Assembly (NCBI GenBank): GCA_964036045.1
Contig: OZ038379.1
Span: forward strand, 23,188,001 to 23,252,000
Reading direction: 5' to 3'
DNA length: 64,000 nucleotides
Origin: Eutreptiella sp. 'Long Island Sound 2002'
Taxonomy: Eukaryota; Protista; Euglenida
This document shows positions 15,284 to 30,046 of the stretch, one piece after another. The position numbers and the translations under genes are program-made. The first letter of the stretch is position 1. Every line of letters begins with the position of its first letter. The notes below the pieces were generated by a model. It ran no database searches. It worked only from the letters and a program-made list of their open reading frames with translations, and had not been told where the DNA came from.

Positions 15284-15456
15284 TTAAGGACAGCCCTTAA
15301 GGACAGCCCCCAGGCACCACCAGCCGCCAACCACCAACTGCCAACCGCCACCAACCACCAGCCGCCAACCACCAACCGCCACCAACCGCCACCAGCCAGT
15401 AACCGCCAACGGCCAACTGCCACCAACCACCAACTGCCAACCACCAACCGCCAACC
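15284..15456. repeat. TTAAGGACAGCCC x2 followed by a degenerate (CCAA/CCGCCA/CCACCA)n array
   Basis: 13-bp tandem at 15284-15309, then about 140 bp of ccaccaaccgcc-type units; explains the Trp/Gly/Leu shadow ORFs on the minus strand. Confidence 0.9.
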
Positions 15457-15836
15457 TGCGAAGTAGAGAAGGTCCCATGACCATGAAGCAGAGAGCGTCT
15501 CTGTGAACGTCCTGACCAGGTGTGGTGCCAGGGCCAGGGTAACACCCCCTTTCCGGGCCAGGGGTGTCGGACCAGGTCCAAGCAGAGGAGACGATGGAGG
15601 GAGAGGCAGCACCATCATGTGTAGCTGGGGAAGGCCCTCAGGGTCACCAAACCACAGTGTGGGCCGTGAGGCACCATGGGGATGTCCGACGGTGCTGAAG
15701 ATTGACCGCATCTCCTCCTGCACCGACTCCTCCCCCTCCTCTGTGTGCGTGCACTTGCGTGTGTCTGTGCATGTGTGTGTCTCTGTGTATATGTCCATGT
15801 GTGTCTGTGTGTGGGCCTTCCCGCGTGCGTGGGTGA

Positions 15837-16574: not shown

Positions 16575-16873
16575 ATGCTTCGGCTCTCTGGACAAAGGGT
16601 CCGTTTGTCAGCTCCTGTGTTTCTGGGCTGTCCTGGACGCAGCAGATGGCTCTCTACACCCCCTGCACAGCAGCTGATGCAGGCCATGACCAGCGTGTTC
16701 CCTGGCCTCACGAAGCTCAGGCACACAATGGACGACCATGTGATTGGCCACGACGACATCAAGGAGGCCATGATGCTTAGCCTGTTGGCGCGCGAGCACT
16801 GCTACCTTGAAGGCCAACCGGGCGTAGCCAAGACCATGCTCAGCGAGATTGTCAGCATCTCCACGGATTTGAG
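16575..16873 (+). CDS. AAA-vWA gene exon 1: predicted mitochondrial presequence plus RavA/MoxR AAA+ N-terminus with Walker A
   Basis: MLRLSGQRVRLSAPVFLGCPGRSRWLST (Arg-rich, no acidic residues, R-x-L-S cleavage-like), then HVIGHDDIKEAMMLSLLAREHCYLEGQPGVAKT (Walker A GxxGxxKT); donor AG|GTTGAG, phase 2. Confidence 0.85.
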
Positions 16874-17699
16874 GTTGAGACCGAGCCTCTCCTTGCCCCT
16901 CCCCCTGCCTTGCCCCCCCCCCCCCCCCCCCCCCGCCCTCCTGTCACAAGAACATTCGTGCAGGTGCACCCCCTGCGCCCGCCGTTGGCACAACTGACCA
17001 ATGGAGGGATGCGGAGTGCAGGGAGGTAAGGATAGAAAGCACCAGCAGAGCAAGGGCATGAGGTGGTGAGAGGCCAGTGGGTACCACCATGATCAAGGGA
17101 AAGGGCTCATCGGAAGGACAAGGGTTGGCGGCGAGAGGCCAATAGACGCCTCCAGCTCCAGACAGCAATCCACTCATGCATAATGCCATTCCCCAACCCC
17201 CGGTGCCACTCATTCATAGCAACTGGGTGGGCTGGGCTGGAGAGTGGCATTGAAACCCGGGGCCAAGAGCGTTTCTGGTGCGGAAGAGAGAAGCGCTGCG
17301 TTTCGCAGAGTGACATGACCTCTGATCTCTATGGCCTCTGATCAAGCAACATTCGATAGCCGTCAGGCACACTGCAGCGGATTGTGTGCTCTGTATCTGC
17401 GAGCTAAGCCCCGGAGGAGGGTCTATAGGCCACAAGAGACCACCACCAGCCTGGCCACGCCCCTCACCCACACACCTCGACGGAAAAGCCAGGGGGCATT
17501 TTCATTTGTGGGGCTGGGCAGGAGGTCTCCTCTGAAGTATCTTGCATACCACTAATTTACATACGCCCACACACCTGCCCATGCACACGCGCGGGCACAC
17601 GCGCACATGTCAAGCATAAGTTGCTTATTTTTTTTTGGCATATGTCGCACGTGGAAAAAAAAGATTTGAAAATGCTGTGGCACGCGACGTGCGCTTTTT

Positions 17700-17885
17700 T
17701 TGTTATGCGACCTACACCTCCCCCACCAAAGTGCACTGGACCTACACCCAAAAAGAAAATAGGAGACTTACACTTTTTAAGAATGATTACGTGATTTATT
17801 CTTTTTTTCTGGCGCAACCTACATCCAAAAAAAAAAGTGCACGCGACCTACCCCCCCCCAAAAAAACTCCACGCGACCTACGCCA
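17700..17885. repeat. Cluster of five (C)GCGACCTAC-like motifs separated by A/C runs
   Basis: Copies at about 17707, 17738, 17814, 17842 and 17872, inside intron 1 of the AAA gene. Confidence 0.75.
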
Positions 17886-20611
17886 AAAAACAAAAAGGAA
17901 CACCGCCAGCATTTTCTTGGTTTAGGACTCCCGTGCTTGGGTGTGGCCCGTGGAGTTGGGGTGATGGACTCCTATGCTTTGGTGTGGCCATCAAGGAAGC
18001 CTGGAGGACATTGATGTTCTCTAGACGCCTTTGCTGAAAGGATTCATCCGTCAAGCATTGCACATCATCAATGCGGCTCGCTTTGTCTGAGTCCCCGGCA
18101 ACATCCCGGAGAATGGATGGGAGGAGGAAGTGACTTGCTAGAAAGCTGCGGAATCTCCTCCTACCCTAGCCTCCATCTCCGAGTGCCCCCCCCCCCCCAT
18201 CTAAAAGGGTTTTTCCTCCATTCCCGACCCCCCCCCAAAAAAAAGTGCATGCGGCTTACGCCTCAAAATTGTTTTGGTACAAACGTGACATATGCACGAA
18301 ACAATGCACGCAACATACGCCAAAAAAAAATGGGATTTATGGTTTTTTCTGCAATTGACCCATGCTTTCCTCCACACATGCCGGTCGTTTACACAAGCGG
18401 CCTAGGACAACATGCGGATATGGGAGCCGTGGAGTGGGAGGCACTTGCCCCACCCCTTCCAAGGGTTCCAAGGGATGCATCCTCAAAGTCAGGTGGGCAC
18501 AAGCCTATGAAGGCTCGTGTGTAAGGGATTGGTTGCGGAGTTCAGGAGCAGGGTACAAGGCACTCCCACACTACCCCATAGGAACGTGGTTTGGCTGAGA
18601 AACTTCTTAGGTACCTGTGCAGGAAGAGTGTTAGAGGAACCCCCGGTTGAAGATTAGGGCTCCTCATCCAAGCCCCCGAATTATCCACCAAGCAGCTCTG
18701 AACTCGACAAAGAGTGCGCTCTACTCGGCGAAGAAGTCTCGTGGCCCTCGCAATTTTATGAGGGGGGTATGGAGTCCATGGGATGGGAAGGAGGCGATTA
18801 AGGTCCGATCCAAGCCAAGCTCTTGGGCACTAGGTGGCTCCATGTACGCTTGCCGACAAGGTCTCCCACCTCTTCACCCTACAACCAACCACTTGTGAAC
18901 CAGTGGCTTGGACCTTAGTAGGTTGGTGCCCTCTCTAGTGTGAGACCATCCACAGCCAGCAGAAGGTCATCTTGTGGTAGGAATTTTGGGCCAATCCTAG
19001 ATCCCAGGGGAATTTCCGGCGTGCAGAGGAAGCAGGCCCTACTACTCATGGGTAAGCCTTGACCGCATCAAGTGCTTTAACCTCACCCGTAGGCGCTAGC
19101 TAGCGGCCGAGTCGGGCATTGATCGTGGCCCTGTCGCGCTATGGTACCGCAAGTTGAATAGGGCGTTCGAGTTGAAGGGCAACGTGAGAGCCCGGTTGCA
19201 GGCCATCAATGGCATACTTCAAGATCACTTGCTCATTCTGGTGCTGATCAACATACTCACCACTACCATTACGGTTCACGTCTTTGCAGCCAAACCACCC
19301 CTTGTAGCCACAACTGCAACTGTGGGGCAATGCTGCCAACATGCAAGTGATTGGCTCCACCCTGGTGGGGGTCCACCTCTTTGCGGACATCATGGTCTCC
19401 ACGGAAAGGATATCCCGGTGTCCCGGGACCTTGGGCAGCTAGAAGTGGGGATGTGCCTAGACCACAACCGCTCTGCTTGGCCATTGATGATCAAGTGCAT
19501 GGCACTTAGCATAAATACCATCAAGAGGGTTGCCTGAATGTGTGCCTTCACCACCGGGTTGTTGGTGATGGTAGCGGGGTTGTGGCGAGTCACGCTGCTT
19601 CTATTTCCATGTAATGGACCTATCTCCCCATTTGGCCACCATTGACTTCTGTTTGGGCGAAATACCCCTATGTCTCACTCAACGTGTGGTAATTTTCGAC
19701 GTTTCAATTCCCTTGGCCGACTAGCATCCGCGATGCTGACGGATTCCTCCACGGCCATGCTGGCCGCCACCCCATCCATGGGCTGGTTGATATTGGGCAC
19801 ATCCGGCGGGAGGCCACACATCTGCGCAATGCCGGCCGTGGGTTTCGTTGCGCCCCGCGGGAGGCCTGCCAGGCGCTCAAACTCGGCCGTCACGTTCGGC
19901 AGCCATGCCCACAGTCTAGTCTGCATTTCCCGAACTGCATCCAAGATACACCAATCCAAGATGCACAAGGTATATGGACCGCTTGAATTTGGGACGGCCA
20001 TAAACTAGACTAAACTATGTCCAAACCTTGCTAAATGAAGCGACAAACACCCGGCATGCTAGCATCAATTATCCAAGAATGAGGTCATGCAACCTCATAG
20101 GGAATGGTGCCGGTGGTACCTCCGCTTTGATTTGTGGGAGAGAGCAAGCAATGACGAAGCATGGTGAACCAAGTGAGACGATTTGCCCTCGAGTGCCATA
20201 CAGATAGGAAATTACATGTGCTGCACATGCGTTGGGGCTGGATGCATATGTTGTGGTCTGCTCATGTCTGCCATCTTTATCACCCGTAGAGACAATATCG
20301 ACATGTCAATGGAGGTGAGGAAGCCAACTAGGAATCAAAAGTTAGTAGGTGCTAAAATGCGAATGAAGTGTCATGCGAGTGTAACCAAAAGTACAAAAAA
20401 GTTATATGAACATTATATGATTTCTCCCCCCGAGTGTCACGCGAGTCACTCGTGTGAGCCACAAAAAAAAAACAGTGCACCCCTTCAAAAAAATTCAAAT
20501 TGCTTATTTTCACTTCCAATCCTGCCCCCCCTTTTGGGCATTACCGGGTTACTTTGCCATTGTGGCCCAAGCGGAGGCCTTAAGGAACCCAAGTTATTTT
20601 GTTATACCCAC

Positions 20612-21005
20612 TTGTGGGCCACTGCTATTTTTCTCCCCCGCTTTGAAACGTTGGGGACTACCCAAACAACACAGGTTATGTAGCTGATCTGCGCATCTAT
20701 GGGCTACTGCTGATTTTCTCCCCTGCTCTGAAGTGTCCCCCCCCCCCCCCCGATGGCAGAGGTTACGGCGCCAATCTGCCCACTTGTGGGCCACTTCTGA
20801 TTTCGTCCCTCGCTTTGAAGCGTTGGGGACCCCCAAACGGCAGCGGTTGTGGAGCCAATCTGCCTATTTGTGGGCCACTGCTGATTTTCTCCCCCGCTCC
20901 GAAGCGTTGGTGACCCCCAAGACGGCAGGAGTTACACAACCAATTTGCCCTTTTGTGGGCCACTTCTGATTTTCTCCCCCACTTTGAAGCGTTGGGGACC
21001 CCTAA
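20612..21005. repeat. About 85-bp tandem array x5
   Basis: ttgtgggccact(g/t)ctgattttctcccc-gct(t)tgaagcgttggggac-like unit starts at 20612, 20697, 20784, 20868 and 20953. Confidence 0.9.
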
Positions 21006-21429
21006 TCCGCCCACCCTGCACTTGTGCCCAAAGCAATTGCAAGCGGTACTTGTGGTGCACACATTGCGGTGGATGCGCTTTTTCCTTGGCTACCACCGAT
21101 TGTCCCGCCAAAGGTGGGGTCACTCGCAACACAGATCTTTGGGTTCGCCATCCTGTTGATAGAGAGCCTACCCCCCCCCCCCCCACACCCCTTGTTGCAC
21201 ATGACAATGTCACCAACACGGCATTGGTGGAACTGACTCTTGCCCGCCCCAAAAAGCAGCGCAACGTTCACACAAGGGCGCACACTTCTTGTGCCCACCA
21301 CCACTCGCACCACGCGTTATGGGCATCTCAGGAAGCCCCCTTTTCCAAAGGATGGTTCCGAGGGGGTCCCAACCCCACAAGAGAGGTGCACAAAGAATGA
21401 CCCCACGCCGCAACGCCGTCTTGAAGGCG

Positions 21430-21936
21430 CAGGTCTCCAAGCTTGGATGGATGATGGATGACCGCCGTATTTGTGCCTACCAAGAGGTTGTTTGGTGCAC
21501 CGGGGAGGTCCTTGAGCAAAGGGCCTGGTCAAAGGCCTTGGGCTGGTGTGCCGACCTCAAGGAGCAAGTGGACAGTTGTGATCCCACCATGTCACCAAAG
21601 CCTCATTGGTGGCAGCATTCATTTTTTGTGACAAAGAACGATTGTTCGTCCAGGGTGCATTGGTTTGTTTTGGGGGAAGTTGTTGAGCCCCCCATGCATT
21701 TATATTTGTGGGATACCAAGGGAAGTGAGTTGTACATGCGGCCTCTTGTTCAACAACTTCGTGACAAGGGTATCCCACTAACTGCCAACCCTTTGGGTTT
21801 CCAACGATTTGATGGTTGGACTTGCGGTTATCAATCCCTATGTCTGCTGCAGCAGTTGTTGCAGATGGACTTCGATACCGATTTGGGCAGGTTCATTGTT
21901 GAACGCATGCCACCAGCCTTTGTGACGCATGTTTAA
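21430..21936 (+). CDS. Ulp1-like (C48/SUMO-type) cysteine protease domain, probably transposon-borne
   Basis: Catalytic pattern in the correct order: VHWFVL (His, 21658), YLWDT (Asp, 21712), GFQRFDGWTCGY (oxyanion Gln 21802, Cys 21823), matching the H..D..Q-x-D-x-x-x-C-G signature of clan CE proteases. Confidence 0.7.
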   Translation, partial: QVSKLGWMMDDRRICAYQEVVWCTGEVLEQRAWSKALGWCADLKEQVDSCDPTMSPKPHWWQHSFFVTKNDCSSRVHWFVLGEVVEPPMHLYLWDTKGSELYMRPLVQQLRDKGIPLTANPLGFQRFDGWTCGYQSLCLLQQLLQMDFDTDLGRFIVERMPPAFVTHV

Positions 21937-22704
21937 GACATTGTGAACAACGCTCCCTAGGTGCCATTCCCGTTTTTTTTTGGGTTTCCGTTGCCCTACC
22001 CCCCTCTCTCTACTATCACAACAACTACCCTATCGTACAATGCGTTTTTAGGTGCAATATATCCAATTCAACGGTTCCCGCTCAACCCCTTCCTCTCTTG
22101 TTCCGAGTGCTCCTTGCCTTCTGCTATCCACTAATCTTTAGTGTGTTTGCCCCTTCCTTCACCATCCAACCATATAGACCCTAACCCACCAACTAATCTG
22201 TTGTACACTTGCTACTTGTGGTGTATTCAATGCCCATTTGGTTGCCCCTCCTATCCCTGTTATCATCCATGTGCCATGGTTCCATTGCCTTGCCCATGCT
22301 TGGAGTAACCAAATTATCCGTGGGAGTGAGTTTGCCTCAGTTCACCTCTCCAAGTAGCAATTGCGGTCAAATTGGATCTTTTCCCCTTAGCACTCGCGTT
22401 GACACCCAAAAAGTTCGGGGGGGGGGCTTTCGCACTGACACTCAAAAAAAAGTTTGTATTTTCTTTTTTGAGTGTCACACGAGTGCACTCGTGTGGCACC
22501 TGTCAACACTCGCGTGACACTTCCCCCCAGAACTGCAAGGTCCAACTGGTTTGCATCGAAGTATGCGTCTCTGTCTTAGAGGGAGGAGAAAGTGAGGGAA
22601 ACAGAGGCGGGGGAGGCAAGGCGATTCTGTGCATCGAACGTGCTCTGTAACGATGATCACCCTCTGTGAAATAGACTGCCATACCCACATGCCCCATCGT
22701 GCAG

Positions 22705-23245
22705 GTACTGGTTCTACCAGATGCACCGGGACACACGCATCAGCGAACTTGTCGGCGAGTCCGTGATCATGCGCTCCAAGGAGGCGCATGGCGAGATCCT
22801 GAAACACGACTACGTCAGGGGCGGCATTTTGACCTGTGAACTCGCAGTGCTCGACGACATCTCCCGGGCCCCGGGCGAGGCCCTCAATGTGCTCCTCCGC
22901 GTGCTCAACGAGCGCAAGTTTGGGTCCATGACGTCTGGGAAGATCCCGCTCATGTCGGCCATTGCTACCGGCAACCCCGTGGGTGAGGCGGGCTACTTCG
23001 GGGATCCACTGGACCCCGCGACCCTGGACCGCTTCACACTGCAGGTCCGCGCGTCAGGCCTTGTGCAGCGGAGCGATTGGAGTGACGCCGCCAAAGTGAT
23101 CGATCTCTACGCTGCGCCGCGCGCGGCCAACGTGGATCGGGACATCGCACAGGTCCACCGGTCGCTGCTGCACGACGCCTCAGCGCTCGTGCCAATGGTC
23201 AGTTTTGGGCCGGAGCCCAAGCGGGTGCTGCTGCGGCTGCTGCAG
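22705..23245 (+). CDS. AAA-vWA gene exon 2: AAA+ core (Walker B, sensor I, Arg finger)
   Basis: gcag|G TAC TGG (phase 2, matches exon 1); FYQMHRDTRISELVG; ELAVLDDISRAPGEALNVLLRVLNERKF (MoxR/RavA-like); SAIATGN; LDPATLDRF; donor CAG|GTGCTG, phase 0. Confidence 0.93.
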
Positions 23246-24058
23246 GTGCTGTTGTGCCCGCCCGGCGCCTTCTTGAGCTCCCTTTCGTTTTTCGGTGCAG
23301 GACTGATGTGCAGTACGCAAAAGGGGCCTCCAACGGACCCTGCCCCGAGGGAGCCACGCCACACAGCGCCAAAGACACTGCAAAATGGGCGAAAAGGAGG
23401 AGGGACACCGCCCCACACACTCCACACCCTTTGCTCTACCCCACCTCCTCGCCCCCTTTGATGGTGATTCTAAGTCCATGAGCGCATCCCCCCCCCCCCA
23501 CACACGCACACAGGGGCGCACGGGCAGTCGCCCTCGGAGTTGTCGCACACTAAAGTCTGTGGTCTGTGAGGCAGGGGGATGGAGCACACACGCATTGGGT
23601 GTGCACCATGTGGCAGGGTTACGGGTGCAGGGAAGTGAAGGGTGGCTTCGGCAGGGCCCTGTGGTGGTGTGGGTCGGATGTCATGGGGGGCGATGACTAC
23701 CGTGAGAGCCAAAAGGGGCCATGATCAAAAAGGAGGGCCTCTGGCTGGTCCAGAAGGATCCCAATGGCGGGGCGTGTCTAGTACACGGTGATGCAGTGGC
23801 TGCAGCCACGGCGACATTCCGAGGACCCCGCCGCCACTGTTCGTGAGGGGCACAACCTCCAGAACAACGGACCGTTCCCAATCGCGTGGCCATGCGCTCG
23901 CTTTGCCCGCAGCCTCGGGGGTCGCGCGGACGGCCCCTTGGCCGCCCTTGGCGCTGGGCGATGCGGGCGGGGCCGACCCGTTCTGGGAGGGGTTTAGGGG
24001 TGGAGGTGCCCGCGCGCCTTCGCCTGCTCGCACAGTCCTGGCGATCACGTGTGACCAG

Positions 24059-24327
24059 GTGCTGAAGGGTGACTACAACTTGACCGACGACACCGCGCTC
24101 TTGACGGACCGCACGTTCCTCGTCAAGGCCGTCACGGTAATGAAGGCGCGCGCAATCCTGTGCGGCCGCCCGGTCTGCGAGCCCGAGGACCTCGCGGTGC
24201 TGCGGTACCTCACGACCTTCCGCGTGCCAGAGCACGTGCATGAGCAGATCGACAGGATCATTGCGGACGTGCTTGCGGAAGAGCCTGCGCCGCCGGTGCC
24301 CGAGGGCGCGTCTTGCCATGAAGACGG
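24059..24327 (+). CDS. AAA-vWA gene exon 3: AAA lid/helical domain (3' end may be 24309)
   Basis: ccag|GTG CTG AAG phase 0; LTDRTFLVKAVTVMKARAILCGRPVCEPEDLAVLRYL resembles the MoxR/RavA lid (sensor II region); two phase-2 donors are possible (GTCTTG at 24310, GTCTGC at 24328). Confidence 0.85.
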
Positions 24328-24900
24328 GTCTGCCACCTGTCATGCCTGCTCCGTGTGTGCCACTAGCGTCCGGCAGGGACTCCATGTCTCGTAAGGATTT
24401 GGTCCTGTGCTATGTACCCACTCAGTAATACCTGCCCATGTCGCACACACAATGTTCCGCTGTGCCCATTGCATGACCCGGTGGGACTTCAGCTGCACCC
24501 CGGTTGAGGGGCGGTTGTACGGAACGTGACGCCATGAGGAGTCATGCAGCCCCCTCCTCCTTTCCGGTGGCCAGGTTTCTGCACCAAAACAGGCATTTCA
24601 CATGACGGCAGGTAGGAACCCCCCCACCTTTTTTTTGGTGGGGCCAGTTGCTACCGGGTAACTACTCTTGCCAAGCGACCTCCCGAGGAGCCACTCTTGG
24701 ATTTTTTTCGCCACGTCAGAACGCTACAGCAAGTGTAAAAGTGTCACGGGGACATGATTATTGCTGAGTCTGGCCCGCTGGTGCGTTGGCATGGCCAACA
24801 ACTGCACAAACATCACCACTGGTGCCTGCATGGCAGCCCAGAGCGGTCGATACTCGAAAATACGGTTACGCTGCAAAAGCGGTATCCGCCCCCCCGAATA

Positions 24901-25240
24901 CCCTCAAGAAGCGTGCTGCCACAGCATCAACACATTCCCGTTCAAAGCGGGAGGACAATGCGCCAGAACGCACTTCCGCTGACCCGTGCTCATCTTCTTC
25001 CGGCTGGAAGATGGATCTGCGCACGGCGCACGATGCGTCCCCGGCGACACGAAAGAGGAAGGCATTCGTAGAAGACACACTTTCGGCGGTTTTGGGCCTC
25101 ACACAATTGCACGGCCTTTAACGCTCCGAAGGTGAGACTGATCCCAGACAAACAGGTCACCTCATCGGCATCCTCTCGGGACGTTGGGAGGTTGTGGTAG
25201 CCGTGAACTGAGACTGCCCGGCCACTGGGCCTTGCACGCC
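24901..25240 (+). repeat. 340-bp inverted repeat, left arm (in intron 3 of the AAA-vWA gene)
   Basis: Reverse complement of 29707-30046; I found no mismatch by eye, and both arms give the same peptide RPKTAESVSSTNAF...VAARFLR in the ORF track. Confidence 0.95.
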
Positions 25241-25281
25241 CTCTTTCGTAATTGCAACTTGGCTCCCTCCCCTTTGCTCAG

Positions 25282-25636
25282 ATCAGAGACGCCGGAGGAC
25301 GGCCGTGCAAGCGGCACTGACCAAGACGCGAGCAGTGACGTGATGCCGGCGCTGCAGCAGCCCCAGGGCAGTGAGGAAGGCGTGGCCGGGGCTGCAGAGG
25401 CCGGGCAGGCCGGGGAGCAGGTGGGCGTGGACCCGGCGGACCGTGGCAGTGATGCTGCGGGGCAGGGCCCGGGGTCGCCGACCCCGTACGAGGGCACGAG
25501 TGACAAGGCGGCGCCGCCCAGCGCGGGGCCGCAGGGCAGTGTGGGCGAGCAGACGGCAAACGATGGGGCCGACAACCAGCGCCAGGCGCCGCCGGACCGG
25601 ACACCGCCCCCTCCAGCGGACCGCAGCGAGGAACAG
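25282..25636 (+). CDS. AAA-vWA gene exon 4: acidic/Pro/Gln/Gly-rich disordered linker
   Basis: ctcag|A TCA GAG phase 2; SETPEDGRASGTDQDASSD...PPDRTPPPPADRSEEQ; donor CAG|GTCTTT phase 0, matching exon 5. Confidence 0.75.
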
Positions 25637-26481
25637 GTCTTTTGCCCCCTCACTTGCCCCGCTCCTGCCCCCTGCCCCGAGGCCAGTCGCCCCATCTACA
25701 CTGACCAGTTTCTCTTTCAGTCCTGCGTATTTTGTAGACCCGTGATTTGCATCGAATGTGTGCACATGGGCGTTGCTGGTCATCCCCGCCCCCCCGCTGA
25801 CCCCCCCCCCCCACACAAAACTGCACTCCCACCATTCCCCCACTACTCACCCCCGCTTACAAATCGCCTTGAGCCCTGACGTGTGTTTGGGCGTGTTAGG
25901 GCCCCTATGCCTCACGGAAGTGCAGAGGGTCTGAGTTCCAACGTCTACCGGGGCGGTGCGGTGGGCACGTTCCGCGGAGGCCATACGTCAGGTGCGCACG
26001 GATGTGGGTGCCTGGGACTACTGCGTCCAATCGCACACGAAAGTGGGGGGGGGGGCGTTCGACGAAAGCTGGCCTCACTGCACGTCGATAGTGCGAGTGC
26101 GGGGCTGTAGGATGTCATGTGACCCCGAGTCACTCATCCCATTGGGAGTTGACGCGGGCCGGTCAATCATCAAAAAAGGGGCCCGGGGACCCACAAGGGC
26201 AGACCCTTTGGTACAACTACGAGCACCGGTTTCGCGGCACGCCCGACTGGCGGGGCAGACAGAGGGACAGCGGGGCTTTGGGAATTTGGAAGTTCGAAGG
26301 GCCATGCCCCTCCCCCCCCCACAGGAACGCTGCGGGAAGGGGGTTTGGGGGGAAGGGGGGGAGAAGAGGTCGCCAGTCCCGCACTTGCCGGCGCCCGGCA
26401 ACGCTCTGTCGGGGGCGCTGAGGTCCCGCTCGGGACGAGGGCTGCGTACAAGACACTGGCCGTACCCCCCGGGTCCGTCAG

Positions 26482-27477
26482 GTCCTGAACGACGACCGCA
26501 AGTCCCGCACCGACGACGATGTGGAGGACCGCGCCCAGCGCACCAAAGCGCGGAACCTGCAGCCGCTGCTGCGGTGCATGCGGGGCCATCTGGAGCGCGG
26601 TCGCACGGACCCCATCGACCACCCGGCCGGCGTCCCGCGCGGCTGGGCGCGCCCCGACACGCTCGCCGGCCTTGAGGACGCCGACCCGGTCGAGTCGTTC
26701 CTGTGGTGCACCGACCCGACGCCGCAGATGCCGCGGACCGCGCGTCGCGTGCGCTCGGAGACCGCGGGACGCGTGGCGATCCTGCGGGACACGAGCATGT
26801 CCATGTACGGCATGTGGAACCAGTGGGCGTCCCTCCTGTGCACCTCCGTCATGGAGTTGGCCCAGCGCCAGAAGATGCGCGTGGGCTACGTCGAGTTCAA
26901 CTCCCACGCGAAGAAGTACGTCTGCGAGAAGCGCCGCAGCTTCTTCACGCGGGAGTACAACCGCCTGGAGGACCGCATCGTCCGCGGCAAGTGCGAGGGA
27001 CTGACCAACTATGAGGCGCCGCTCGCCATGGCCCTGGAGGAGTTCGACGCGCAGCTGCCCCGGCACCGCCGCGCGCGCACGGGGCCCGGCGGCGCGGCGG
27101 AGCCCAGGCGGCACACGGACCAGCACATCCTCTTCATCACCGACGGGCGCGCGACGTCCGGCGACCGGAACGTGCGGAAGGAGATCGCGTTGGCGCAGGA
27201 GCTCGGGGTCGCGGTGCACACGGTGTTCATCGGATACACCCAGTGCCCGAAGGTGCTGGACGACATGAGCAGGACCACGAACGGCAGCCGGTTCATCGCG
27301 TACTTCGACACCGACACCAACGCCGTGCAGGTGGTGGAGCGCGACGCATTGCACCTGCAGAAGATGTACGCGCAGAGCGGCAAGGACGAGGAACTGCGAA
27401 ATCTGGACCGCATGGCGCGTCTGTCCCCCGTATTCCAGCGCTTCATCCGCAAGAAAGTGCAGGAGAGCGAGGCCTAG
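26482..27477 (+). CDS. AAA-vWA gene exon 5 (terminal): von Willebrand factor A domain with intact MIDAS (ViaA/CoxE-like)
   Basis: gtcag|GTC CTG phase 0; MIDAS elements ILRDTSMSM (DxSxS), EGLTNY (Thr) and ILFITDG (Asp); very high GC3; TAG at 27475-27477. Confidence 0.93.
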   Translation, partial: VLNDDRKSRTDDDVEDRAQRTKARNLQPLLRCMRGHLERGRTDPIDHPAGVPRGWARPDTLAGLEDADPVESFLWCTDPTPQMPRTARRVRSETAGRVAILRDTSMSMYGMWNQWASLLCTSVMELAQRQKMRVGYVEFNSHAKKYVCEKRRSFFTREYNRLEDRIVRGKCEGLTNYEAPLAMALEEFDAQLPRHRRARTGPGGAAEPRRHTDQHILFITDGRATSGDRNVRKEIALAQELGVAVHTVFIGYTQCPKVLDDMSRTTNGSRFIAYFDTDTNAVQVVERDALHLQKMYAQSGKDEELRNLDRMARLSPVFQRFIRKKVQESEA

Positions 27478-29706
27478 TGAGGGGGCTCCACGGGCCCGAA
27501 CGGGCTGTTGTTGGGTGTGGGTCGGGGTTCGGGGCTGGGTCCGCCCCCTGAGAGGCCCCGTGAATGCCTCGTGATCGGGAACGGGGTAGTGGAGTGGTTG
27601 GGTGGTCTTTGTGCCCCATCCGGTCCGGCTCCCCGACGGTACCTGCCCAAGCCTCTGAACACGATGGGGCAAGTGACTCAGGACACCGCGCATCCCCCGG
27701 GGGGACTGGGGACCTGGTCCTTCCGGGGGGGCAAGGGAACTCAAGGGACCAGCGTGCCTGGAGCGTGTGGTCTGTATGCCCCCCCCCCCCCCGCACTCCG
27801 TCCTGCGCTACCGTTGGGTGTTGCCCTGCAGCAATGCTCCGTGCGTTGAACTGGGGCAGGGGCTGCTGGTGCACGGCGCACACACTGCGCTTGCACCCCC
27901 CTCTCCCTCCCTTCCCTTACAGGGGCCCCCGCAGGCCCCACCCCCTTAGACCAAATTTGTGGTCGCCACGGTCTCGTGTTGGAGTTGTTGTACCTGTTCA
28001 GAGGGGGTCCCCTTCTCATTCTTTCTCGTCCCGGACTGTGTTGCTTGCTTGGTTGCCTTGATGGACTCCTGGGAAATGCAGAACAGCAGTACGGCAGGAT
28101 GAAGGGCGGAAGGGCAAGAGAGGCACTGCCGGGATGACCTGCCCCCCCGATTGACCCGCCAATCGGATCTGGATTTAGCCCTGCGTGACCCCTTGTCCCC
28201 GGAGTGCCTTCCTGTGCAATGCCCGGGTCACTTGACCGAAACACTTTGGAAAGAATTGGTGCCGAGAAGAAGGCTTGAAGGCAGCAATACAGTTGTGTGT
28301 GTGAAGACCCTGCCGCTCCCCATACACCCCCCATTGCTCGTCCCTACTCTGCCTGGCCGGGCCCATACCTACTGGACACCGCAGGCTGAGGTCTGTTTCT
28401 GTAATATCTGTGTTAGTGCGTGCTCATGTACTGCCAATGGGCGGCGCGTGTCCTACGCCTTTTCAAGGATCCTCGAGGCGTATGGATGTCGGATGTCACA
28501 GTCTTCCCAGGCGAATGGGGGAGTGCCGCAGTCAAGCGTTCCCCTTTGTCGCCCAGCAGCTCATGCAGCGAACATGAACAGATATTTGGCGACGTCCAGT
28601 GCCGCTTGCAGCGTAAAGGGGACCCGGTGGGAAATGTGATTGTGAGGGCTGCTGAATCATTGCCCAGCCTTCAACCCGGGTACTTAATCTTGATGTATTC
28701 GTCCTCTGGGAACGGAGAACGCTTTTCCCATCCGCCCTCTTGGCGGTGAACACCTCATCTGAGCACCCGCCATGTCGGAGGCCCCGCCCTTCTTTCAGCA
28801 CCACCGGGCGGTGCAACTGTCAGTCCCTGCTCGAGGGGGTGCTTGCACCAAAGGCAGGGTGGTCGCGGTGCACAGTTTCTCGTCCCTCCCAATCAACCAA
28901 TCAAGAGGAGAGTTGTTGAGGTCGCACGCGGGTTGCCTTGCCGTCAAGCACTGCCATGAAGATTGAAGCCGGACAAAGCGAAGATTGCGCATTGGCGCGG
29001 CTACACGATAGCCACAGCCAAATGCCTGCCACGTTCCTCCCTCTGCTCTTCTCAACCGAAAGTGTTCTCCGTGCGGTCGACTGTTTTCGGCGTTTGATAT
29101 TTCGCTGTGATTAGCTGTGTTTCTGCACAATACAGTGCGGTACCCGAGTGTTGTCGAAGATGGGGATCGTGATTTGCTGTATGCAGAGACGCACAGATGT
29201 TTCGACAACAAGAGCTGTGATAATCAGTGGCAGACTGTGAAGGTGAGCTGGGGATAAATGGGACTGGTGGAGCATCGAACACGGCCATTGGGAGGTACAC
29301 ATGATGCATCGTTTTCTTCAGTTTCCGTGCAGCTCCATTCAGTTTGCGTCTTTCGTAGCCCTTGGGGTATTAAGCCGACTGGCCGAGTTGCTGCTGAAGC
29401 GCGCAGGCCCGCTGCGTGGCAGCCGCCGGTGCACGAAGCAGTTACAGGGCGCAACGGCACGCTACGCGGCGGTTGCATAGCCCATTCAATGCCCCAGATG
29501 AAGCATTTGCTGACTGGCACCCGCCAGTCCGTTTTTCAACGTCCGTGTTTCCTGAACGTTGCAAAAAGGCATCGTGCTTTACCACCACAGGAGTCATGGC
29601 TGGGTCGATGCAGCCCTTGCGTACGACGTCTCCAGTTCATCTCATCACAAATGCTCACACACACAGCCATTGCAGCAGTCGGCCTGTGTCACTTCGGGAT
29701 TTGTCA

Positions 29707-30046
29707 GGCGTGCAAGGCCCAGTGGCCGGGCAGTCTCAGTTCACGGCTACCACAACCTCCCAACGTCCCGAGAGGATGCCGATGAGGTGACCTGTTTGTC
29801 TGGGATCAGTCTCACCTTCGGAGCGTTAAAGGCCGTGCAATTGTGTGAGGCCCAAAACCGCCGAAAGTGTGTCTTCTACGAATGCCTTCCTCTTTCGTGT
29901 CGCCGGGGACGCATCGTGCGCCGTGCGCAGATCCATCTTCCAGCCGGAAGAAGATGAGCACGGGTCAGCGGAAGTGCGTTCTGGCGCATTGTCCTCCCGC
30001 TTTGAACGGGAATGTGTTGATGCTGTGGCAGCACGCTTCTTGAGGG
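29707..30046 (-). repeat. 340-bp inverted repeat, right arm (2.2 kb downstream of the vWA stop codon)
   Basis: Reverse complement of 24901-25240; identity stops abruptly at both ends. Confidence 0.95.

Follow-up and report, generated by a model that had tools for sequence, protein, structure and literature searches.

A RavA-like AAA+ ATPase fused to a vWA domain in Eutreptiella, predicted to be mitochondrial, and its protist and bacterial relatives

A 64,000-nt stretch of the genome of the euglenid Eutreptiella sp. 'Long Island Sound 2002' (GCA_964036045.1, contig OZ038379.1, positions 23,188,001 to 23,252,000 of the forward strand; hereafter the window, numbered from its first letter) contains a gene at 16575-27477 that encodes an AAA+ ATPase module and a von Willebrand factor A (vWA) domain in a single 819-aa protein. 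The gene comprises five exons on the + strand; the spliced model is 2,460 nt long, with a single terminal stop, and all four introns are of the GT-AG type, with donors reading ...AG/GT and acceptors ending in CAG. The exons are listed below with their Pfam matches and with the motifs located on them, including the MIDAS (the metal-ion-dependent adhesion site) of the vWA domain.

16575-16873, + strand: exon 1, with the start codon, a presequence-like extension, the beginning of the AAA+ core and Walker A; Pfam bpMoxR 2e-6; placed by frame and an AG/GT donor
16575-16652, + strand: extension within exon 1, aa 1-26, with the pattern R-W-L↓S-T
16812-16835, + strand: Walker A, GQPGVAKT, in exon 1
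16874-22704, + strand: intron 1, 5,831 nt, containing repeats (20607-20992) and an open reading frame (ORF; 21289-21936)
22705-23245, + strand: exon 2; Pfam AAA_5 6e-9, bpMoxR 9e-7 and AAA_3; RNA contigs over 22703-23143
22724-22825, + strand: helix-2 insert, in exon 2
22841-22864, + strand: Walker B, LAVLDDIS, in exon 2
22958-22975, + strand: sensor 1, in exon 2
23024-23044, + strand: arginine finger, LDRF, in exon 2
24059-24327, + strand: exon 3, the AAA lid, its end being the border of lid and linker; Pfam AAA_lid_8 (PF17868) 3.5e-5; RNA joint 24327->25282
24098-24118, + strand: sensor 2, LLTDRTF, in exon 3
24212-24238, + strand: FRVP motif, in exon 3
25282-25636, + strand: exon 4, an acidic linker rich in Pro, Gly and Ala, with no Pfam domain match; acceptor confirmed in RNA, donor inferred
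26482-27477, + strand: exon 5, a helical segment ahead of the vWA domain, a conserved hairpin and the vWA domain; Pfam VWA 1e-8; RNA contigs over 26694-27482
26620-26655, + strand: hairpin tip, HPAGVPR, in exon 5
26785-26805, + strand: MIDAS D-x-S-x-S, in exon 5
26998-27012, + strand: MIDAS T, in exon 5
27133-27147, + strand: MIDAS D, in exon 5
27475-27477, + strand: stop codon
27478-28400, + strand: transcribed stretch past the stop codon (3' untranslated region or read-through), most of it covered by overlapping or abutting RNA contigs of X1-X3 (see below)

Parts of 22600-27600 are contained in eleven public sequencing runs. Transcripts were checked over 22500-28400 in three estuary metatranscriptomes (X1, X2 and X3), and a further run without a label, from a related organism (X8), was compared over the same span. 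At a low depth (2-6), RNA contigs span most of exon 2, portions of exons 3-5 and some 900 nt past the stop codon. X8 looks like DNA, since it covers introns as well as exons. The junction of exons 1 and 2 is present in X1, X2 and X3, where a contig beginning at 22703 runs upstream into the letters that end exon 1. That of exons 3 and 4 is present in X3 alone, as a GT..AG joint (24327->25282) anchored 57 nt into unique sequence; it sets the exon 3 donor at 24327/24328, 63 nt short of the end of the open frame at 24390. The position of the exon 2-3 junction is suggested by gap-free colinearity across the join with bacterial and eukaryotic homologues, and that of the exon 4-5 junction by frame and canonical splice sites. 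The Eutreptiella gene is genuine and transcribed, and two of its four splice junctions are seen in RNA.

These results bear on an earlier note on this DNA, made from the letters alone, which had described five phase-consistent exons encoding AAA+, an acidic linker and a vWA domain with full MIDAS in about 815-820 aa. The protein proves to be 819 aa long, with its sites and domains now located. The note had also named exons 3-4 as the place to check the five-exon mRNA. That joint was recovered from X3; elsewhere in the proposed mRNA, only the exon 1-2 junction is present in RNA.

Two contigs depart from the genomic sequence. One X1 contig tracks exon 2 to 22980 and then continues as a similar but different coding sequence, and is probably a chimera, joined to a paralog or to sequence of a related species from that estuary. 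An X8 contig skips 48 nt (at 27072-27121) of the loop that separates the second MIDAS element from the third, and diverges at 27053 and 27143; this loop may be variable, or a paralog may be present.

The protein has the features of the MoxR class, namely a single AAA+ module with all motifs, a helix-2 insert and matches to AAA_5, AAA_3 and bpMoxR. Walker A lies at residues 80-87, Walker B (LDD) at 146-153, sensor 1 at 185-190, the arginine finger at 207-213 and sensor 2 at 294-300. Each Pfam family matches one stretch only, all on the same module. VWA8 is about 1,900 aa long and midasin about 4,900 aa, both with several AAA modules; with its single module the protein is neither of these, in line with the contrast drawn in the earlier note. 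The linker (aa 355-505; about 150 aa) is acidic and rich in Pro, Gly and Ala (33 D+E, 10 K+R, 20 P) and disordered, the equivalent stretch of the homologue P0005 having a pLDDT below 50. The MIDAS is complete, with D-x-S-x-S at 591-595 (D591, S593 and S595), T663 and D709, and its ligand columns are invariant or nearly so across the family. In a 72-sequence alignment, the 819-aa protein keeps 77 of the 78 family columns conserved at 90% or more.

By sequence, the AAA half appears nearest to RavA and MoxR, and not to ChlD, VWA8 or midasin, in agreement with the earlier description of its motifs as RavA-like rather than ChlD-like. In a profile search of the Protein Data Bank (PDB), it matched RavA (3nbx) at 6e-27, MoxR 2r44 at 6e-24, midasin at 5e-8 and NorQ at 2e-5, and no ChlI, BchI or CbbQ chain was among the 60 best sequence matches. 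hhalign against E. coli RavA gave a probability of 99.2% over 274 columns, including the lid motif, and the RavA-type lid AAA_lid_8, found on exon 3, is present in most homologues too. In structural comparison of the AAA part alone, taken from a model of the orthologue P0005, MoxR 2r44 matched with a TM score of 0.75, and YeaC, MoxR1 and RavA also matched. The protein falls outside RavA as defined by the NCBIfam equivalog PRK13531: exon 2 scored 16.4 bits and five full-length members 28-50 bits, against a cut-off of 681. RavA was nevertheless the only noteworthy NCBIfam match, accompanied by a weak match to 'putative cobaltochelatase'; single exons gave almost none. The C-terminal triple-helical and LARA domains of RavA are absent, and alignments stop at about RavA residue 283-301 of 498.

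By sequence, the profile of the vWA half finds only generic vWA domains in the PDB. An AlphaFold2 (AF2) model of exon 5 (pLDDT 86.6, pTM 0.82) has the vWA fold. Its longest structural alignments, of about 255-315 columns, are to ChlD/BchD, ViaA, NorD and Rea1, which are vWA proteins partnered with AAA+ ATPases, and these span the helices and hairpin ahead of the vWA core. Stand-alone vWA domains, among them CLCA1 and capillary morphogenesis protein 2, give alignments of about 185-195 columns; some inter-alpha-trypsin-inhibitor chains also give long alignments (240-295 columns), with an rmsd of about 16. hhalign matched ViaA over its vWA part only (residues 308-462; 81.6% probability, 17% identity) and gave no match to the ViaA N-terminal domain, which places the protein outside the ViaA family. 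The tip of the hairpin has an invariant Pro and a nearly invariant Arg in the family, and this hairpin may correspond to the 'finger' that has been proposed in NorD (PMC9976466). For the whole chain, the AF2 model of the orthologue P0005 shows an AAA and lid region (41-375) and a vWA domain, both modelled with confidence, and between them a linker (389-523) that is disordered.

The fused protein belongs to a broad family. When 1.84 billion representatives were scanned in full by HMMER with exon 5, no more than 199 proteins reached E <= 0.001; many of these are of 590-930 aa with the match at the C-terminus. Ten such full-length homologues were compared with Pfam: AAA_5 was present in all ten, and bpMoxR, AAA_lid_8 and a C-terminal vWA family in nine of the ten each. 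A profile search of a 5.8-billion set gave 379 matches, mostly bacterial and of about 630-690 aa; tblastn of a distant family member against plasmids gave no match. Eukaryotic members include Hondaea fermentalgiana (two copies), Emiliania huxleyi, Durusdinium trenchii, Gymnodinium smaydae (P0273), a dinoflagellate MGD sequence (P0274) and an MMETSP transcript (P0005). The AAA and vWA halves lie in one ORF in P0005, P0273 and P0274, which derive from transcriptomes. In addition, a eukaryotic cluster of 61 members, found most often in diatoms, stands in the ESM Atlas under the name 'ATPase RavA family protein'; the Pfam families listed for it are AAA and lid families.

Bacterial members were placed by a scan of species-representative genomes with a profile from a 12-row alignment. 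They are found in Entotheonella/Tectomicrobia, Nitrospinota, Thermodesulfobacteriota/Dadabacteria, Poribacteria, Ignavibacteriales, SAR324 and Zymogenaceae, nearly all uncultured, and their identity to the Eutreptiella protein is 53-58% in the AAA half and about 40% in the vWA half. Fusion is the common state across the bacterial family, with hundreds of such proteins, and in the protist relatives (dinoflagellates, a haptophyte and labyrinthulids). A literature search (RavA and diatoms; MoxR and dinoflagellates; VWA8, MoxR and protists) found no paper on the fused family, whose members stand in the databases under generic names ('AAA family ATPase', 'MoxR-like ATPase', 'ATPase RavA'). The family is thus already on record and not special to this protist, and the earlier view of the locus as the best candidate for an undescribed system is weakened. 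Bacterial MoxR/vWA pairs are treated in the literature consulted as separate proteins (PMC10743472); the earlier note's premise that bacterial MoxR ATPases work with a separately encoded vWA partner fails for the fused family.

An IQ-TREE phylogeny (44 rows, 626 columns) took a distant group of GC-rich fused proteins as its root. All 17 eukaryotic rows form one clade (support 100/99), which is placed beside a bacterial clade with support of 89/99. The Eutreptiella protein groups with E. huxleyi and two further eukaryotic sequences. Other dinoflagellate sequences fall into other eukaryotic subclades, and this spread points to old paralogs or eukaryote-to-eukaryote transfers. The tree singles out no donor lineage. 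No alphaproteobacterium appears in it, which favours lateral transfer over mitochondrial descent. Because the outgroup and most ingroup bacteria have the fused gene, fusion predates its acquisition by eukaryotes. The bacterial members and the eukaryotic clade together support the bacterial origin suggested earlier, with the gene already fused before its transfer.

Bacterial homologues align from residue 40 of the Eutreptiella protein, which gives an extension of 39 aa, and themselves begin 4-7 residues before the conserved core. Where the N-terminus is complete, most eukaryotic members begin with a further 24-85 residues, basic and with few or no acidic ones, which the bacterial members lack. 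The first 30 residues in Eutreptiella have a net charge of +5, and the first D or E is at residue 53. The R24-W-L↓S-T pattern, perhaps cut after L26, fits the R-3 rule of the matrix processing peptidase. Many orthologues begin MLR, and R-x-x↓S/A is found in about half of those checked. The extension thus sets the eukaryotic protein apart from the bacterial ones and is basic, hydroxylated and free of acidic residues, with an R-2/R-3 pattern; it is predicted to be a mitochondrial presequence, and the protein is probably sent to the mitochondrion. The earlier proposal of a presequence is strengthened by the basic extensions and R-x-x↓S/A patterns of the eukaryotic orthologues, which are patterns found in silico. 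In algae with complex plastids, import into the plastid calls for a signal peptide. The highest Kyte-Doolittle mean over 12 residues in Eutreptiella is 1.18, too low for a signal peptide; this lack of a signal-peptide-like core argues against plastid import. Hondaea is a non-photosynthetic labyrinthulid, and the presence of the family there argues that its role is not plastid-bound.

In bacterial relatives, a run of nine to eleven A residues (A9-A11) is conserved at the border of AAA lid and linker (loci L008-L049, L055, L001, L003, L005 and L006), as in this example.

L022, 5931-5940: conserved A9-A11 run at the AAA-lid/linker border

At 26 bacterial loci the gene appears split: the first ORF (AAA and lid) stops 5-8 codons past the run, and the vWA ORF lies in the -1 frame, which is open from the run onward and carries linker and vWA. 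Fused genes of Tectomicrobia, Nitrospinota, Poribacteria, Abyssobacteria, one Thermodesulfobacteriota and one member of the Ignavibacteriales keep the run at the same site, 21-22 codons after the FR[VI]P lid motif; frames were scored at nine of the run-bearing fused loci, and there each of the two shifted frames meets a stop within 0-11 codons. The lid/linker site accounts for 38 of the 49 A/T runs of at least nine in the 513 kb of loci fetched. Loci of the SAR324, Myxococcota and Acidobacteriota types lack the run and have a separate AAA-only paralog immediately downstream. The layout suggests that slippage at the run would give AAA-only and AAA-vWA products, in the manner of dnaX-type recoding, and the retention of the run or the AAA-only paralog pattern suggests that the two products are made on purpose. 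The working particle of these bacteria may therefore mix AAA-only and AAA-vWA subunits. The principle of such recoding is already known, since it has been demonstrated by experiment for 'magnesium chelatase' genes in other bacteria and in archaea (PMC3711429, PMC5009743).

Eukaryotic members have a Pro-rich stretch in place of the run. In the Eutreptiella gene the equivalent point is in exon 3, about 10 codons short of its end, and a transcript that kept intron 3 would meet a stop after 21 codons. Exons 4 and 5 are also bracketed by the arms of a perfect inverted repeat.

24901-25240: left arm, 340 nt, inside intron 3
29707-30046: right arm, 2.2 kb past the stop codon

RNA contigs matching the left arm were considered as evidence of inversion and rejected: they run off into the flanks of the right arm and so derive from that copy, which is the transcribed one. 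There was no evidence of an alternative product or of inversion, and in the alga the fused product alone is evident. It is a long shot that the whole family needs AAA-only and AAA-vWA chains in a set ratio, which bacteria would obtain by slippage or a second gene and the alga by retention of intron 3 or by flipping of exons 4 and 5.

Taking these results together, we put at about 0.6 the probability that this is a nuclear gene for a single-chain, RavA-like AAA+ ATPase of the MoxR class which carries its own vWA/MIDAS adaptor on a linker and remodels a client protein in the mitochondrion. The basic N-terminal extension would act as a matrix presequence. The AAA+ modules would assemble into a hexameric ring, and the MIDAS metal of the vWA arm would bind an acidic side chain on the client. 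The conserved hairpin ahead of the vWA domain would make contact with the pore of the ring, and ATP hydrolysis would thereby pull on the client. In what is the weakest step, the client would be a mitochondrial enzyme complex in need of remodelling or cofactor loading; action on respiratory or metallo-enzymes, as suggested earlier, could be proposed by analogy only. The model of ring, MIDAS and hairpin was put forward for NorQ-NorD and extended to RavA-ViaA and CbbQ-CbbO (PMC9976466), and the mechanism of the MoxR-vWA pairs NorQD, CbbQO and RavA-ViaA is also treated in PMC9489729.

Several points weigh against this reading. The exon 4-5 junction is without RNA support, no contig of X1-X3 lying over 25455-26636. 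All inspected members of the family have D-D in Walker B in place of D-E, so that hydrolysis may be slow or regulated. Two orthologues, Hondaea P0240 and JGI P0272, have weak presequence features, and the literature search found no proteomic or imaging data on localisation for the family. Six tethered vWA arms may be more than one ring can take. Finally, the bacterial neighbourhoods of the fused gene contain no conserved partner or client gene. Genes for YceG, a glutamate-kinase-like protein, a GST, a thioesterase and GyrA recur beside it and were considered as conserved partners; they were dropped, being confined to closely related Dadabacteria-type genomes and on the opposite strand.

In two Tectomicrobia-like loci (L001 and L005), the fused gene lies head-to-head with a 2-hydroxyacid dehydrogenase gene, a malate dehydrogenase gene (mdh) and an sdhCAB block, and is followed by a short-chain dehydrogenase gene and a PHP-domain gene. 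The adjacency to sdhCAB and mdh was given no weight as a clue to the client, as it is seen in two related contigs only.

A different role for the fused protein, as a 'D-like' subunit of an ATP-dependent class I metal chelatase (ChlI/ChlD or CobS/CobT type) that acts together with an AAA-only protein and a subunit binding metal or substrate, is unlikely. It would account for the ChlD-like architecture, for the whole-chain Foldseek matches of P0005 to ChlD/BchD and Rv2850c, and for the weak cobaltochelatase match; the AAA-only paralog that adjoins the gene in some bacteria and the poly-A recoding layout, which resembles that of 'magnesium chelatase' genes (PMC3711429), are also in keeping with it. 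Those Foldseek matches are at only 14-15% identity and a TM score of about 0.3, however, and the nearest sequence relatives are RavA and MoxR. Walker A is intact, the lid is of the AAA_lid_8 and not the AAA_lid_2 type, and Pfam Mg_chelatase falls below its cut-off on exon 1 (E 0.014; 15.2 bits vs 20.3), with homologues near or below the cut-off and reaching at most E 1e-5. No ChlH/CobN-like gene was found among the Pfam-annotated neighbours, the other loci having been compared by ORF clustering only. Orthology to ChlD was rejected on Pfam, NCBIfam and identity, the likeness being architectural only. The chances are similarly slim that the protein is real and acts in the cytosol, or else in the plastid, where it could be a Rubisco activase of the CbbQ/CbbO kind. 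In some bacteria Rubisco is indeed served by MoxR/vWA pairs (PMC5437159), the mitochondrial location is a prediction, and the two orthologues with poor presequence features would be easier to explain. The extension nevertheless lacks a signal-peptide-like core, the family is present in Hondaea, and NorQ, of the same group as CbbQ, matched the AAA half at 2e-5 only. On these grounds, and with no CbbQ among the 60 best PDB matches, the Rubisco activase was dropped.

Two further explanations are highly improbable. If the gene model were an artefact, with neighbouring AAA and vWA genes read as one or the assembly in error at the inverted repeat, the missing RNA over the exon 4-5 junction and the position of the perfect 340-nt repeat around exons 4 and 5 would be explained. 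The RNA that joins exons 3 and 4 extends 57 nt into unique sequence beyond the repeat arm, however, the exon phases are consistent, and the same order is found in one ORF in transcriptome orthologues and in many bacteria. The other explanation, which would make the protein part of a MoxR-vWA system of defence or conflict, the type on which the Pfam family bpMoxR (PF20030) was defined, is raised by the rank of that family as the best or second-best Pfam match. Against it, PADLOC returned no family beyond one marginal match, the bacterial loci have housekeeping neighbours and no beta-propeller or VMAP partner, and the eukaryotic clade has organelle-type extensions.

Other features of the locus were noted in passing. 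The ORF in intron 1 (215 aa) has a cysteine-protease-like look, and the repeats near it are direct repeats of 130 nt. Upstream of the gene, at 15286-15470, is a CCA/CCG-rich tandem array with a period of 10-17 nt. Rfam gave no match in the 64-kb window.

MoxR ATPases and their vWA partners are widespread, with clients known for a few pairs only. The compact RavA-like/vWA family described here is common to major marine protists and little-studied marine bacteria, and offers an entry to a probable mitochondrial MoxR system of marine protists. Should it prove mitochondrial, it would correspond on a small scale to VWA8 of animals. The series seen in bacteria (fused, joined by slippage, or fused with an AAA-only gene beside it) bears on the number of adaptor arms per MoxR ring. 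Its clients could then be sought by knockout in a relative open to transformation, for instance a diatom if the ESM Atlas cluster proves orthologous.

Among known systems, ChlD/BchD has the same order of AAA, acidic Pro-rich linker and MIDAS vWA, and gives the best whole-chain structural matches. Its AAA module is of the ChlI type (Pfam Mg_chelatase and AAA_lid_2), with 14-15% identity to the present family; ChlD partners ChlI and ChlH in plastids and bacteria, whereas the family described here is also found in non-photosynthetic organisms. The bacterial relatives resemble the genes described by Antonov et al. in 2013 (PMC3711429) in their layout, in which an AAA ORF is followed by an A9-A11 run and then by a second ORF in the -1 frame, with fused versions in other species. 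That set comes from Pseudomonas, Burkholderia, Delftia, Herpetosiphon and methanococci and is likened here by layout, family identity aside; the Eutreptiella gene, in contrast, lacks the A-run.

VWA8 and midasin are likewise eukaryotic chains that join dynein-related AAA_5 modules to a C-terminal MIDAS vWA domain, and VWA8 is a mitochondrial matrix protein in animals (PMC10743472). The Eutreptiella protein differs in having one AAA module in 819 aa; it is set apart from VWA8 without a direct alignment, and VWA8 was not among the top 30 Swiss-Prot structure matches. With NorQ-NorD and CbbQ-CbbO the protein would share the proposed principle of a MIDAS on a client carboxylate and a vWA hairpin coupled to the ring (PMC9976466), and the vWA domain of NorD is among the long structural matches of exon 5. 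Those systems have separate genes, one adaptor per hexamer and large N-terminal adaptor domains, and the similarity of NorQ to the AAA half is slight (2e-5).

RavA-ViaA of E. coli is alike in the style of its motifs (LD[DE]I..A......LN.LL..LNER and the lid SDR) and in a MIDAS-bearing vWA domain, that of ViaA, to which the Eutreptiella vWA domain aligns (81.6%). Identity is about 20-24%, and Walker B in Eutreptiella is D-D. After the lid, a linker and vWA domain take the place of the LARA and triple-helical part of RavA, so that what is encoded by two genes as RavA and ViaA is one polypeptide in Eutreptiella.

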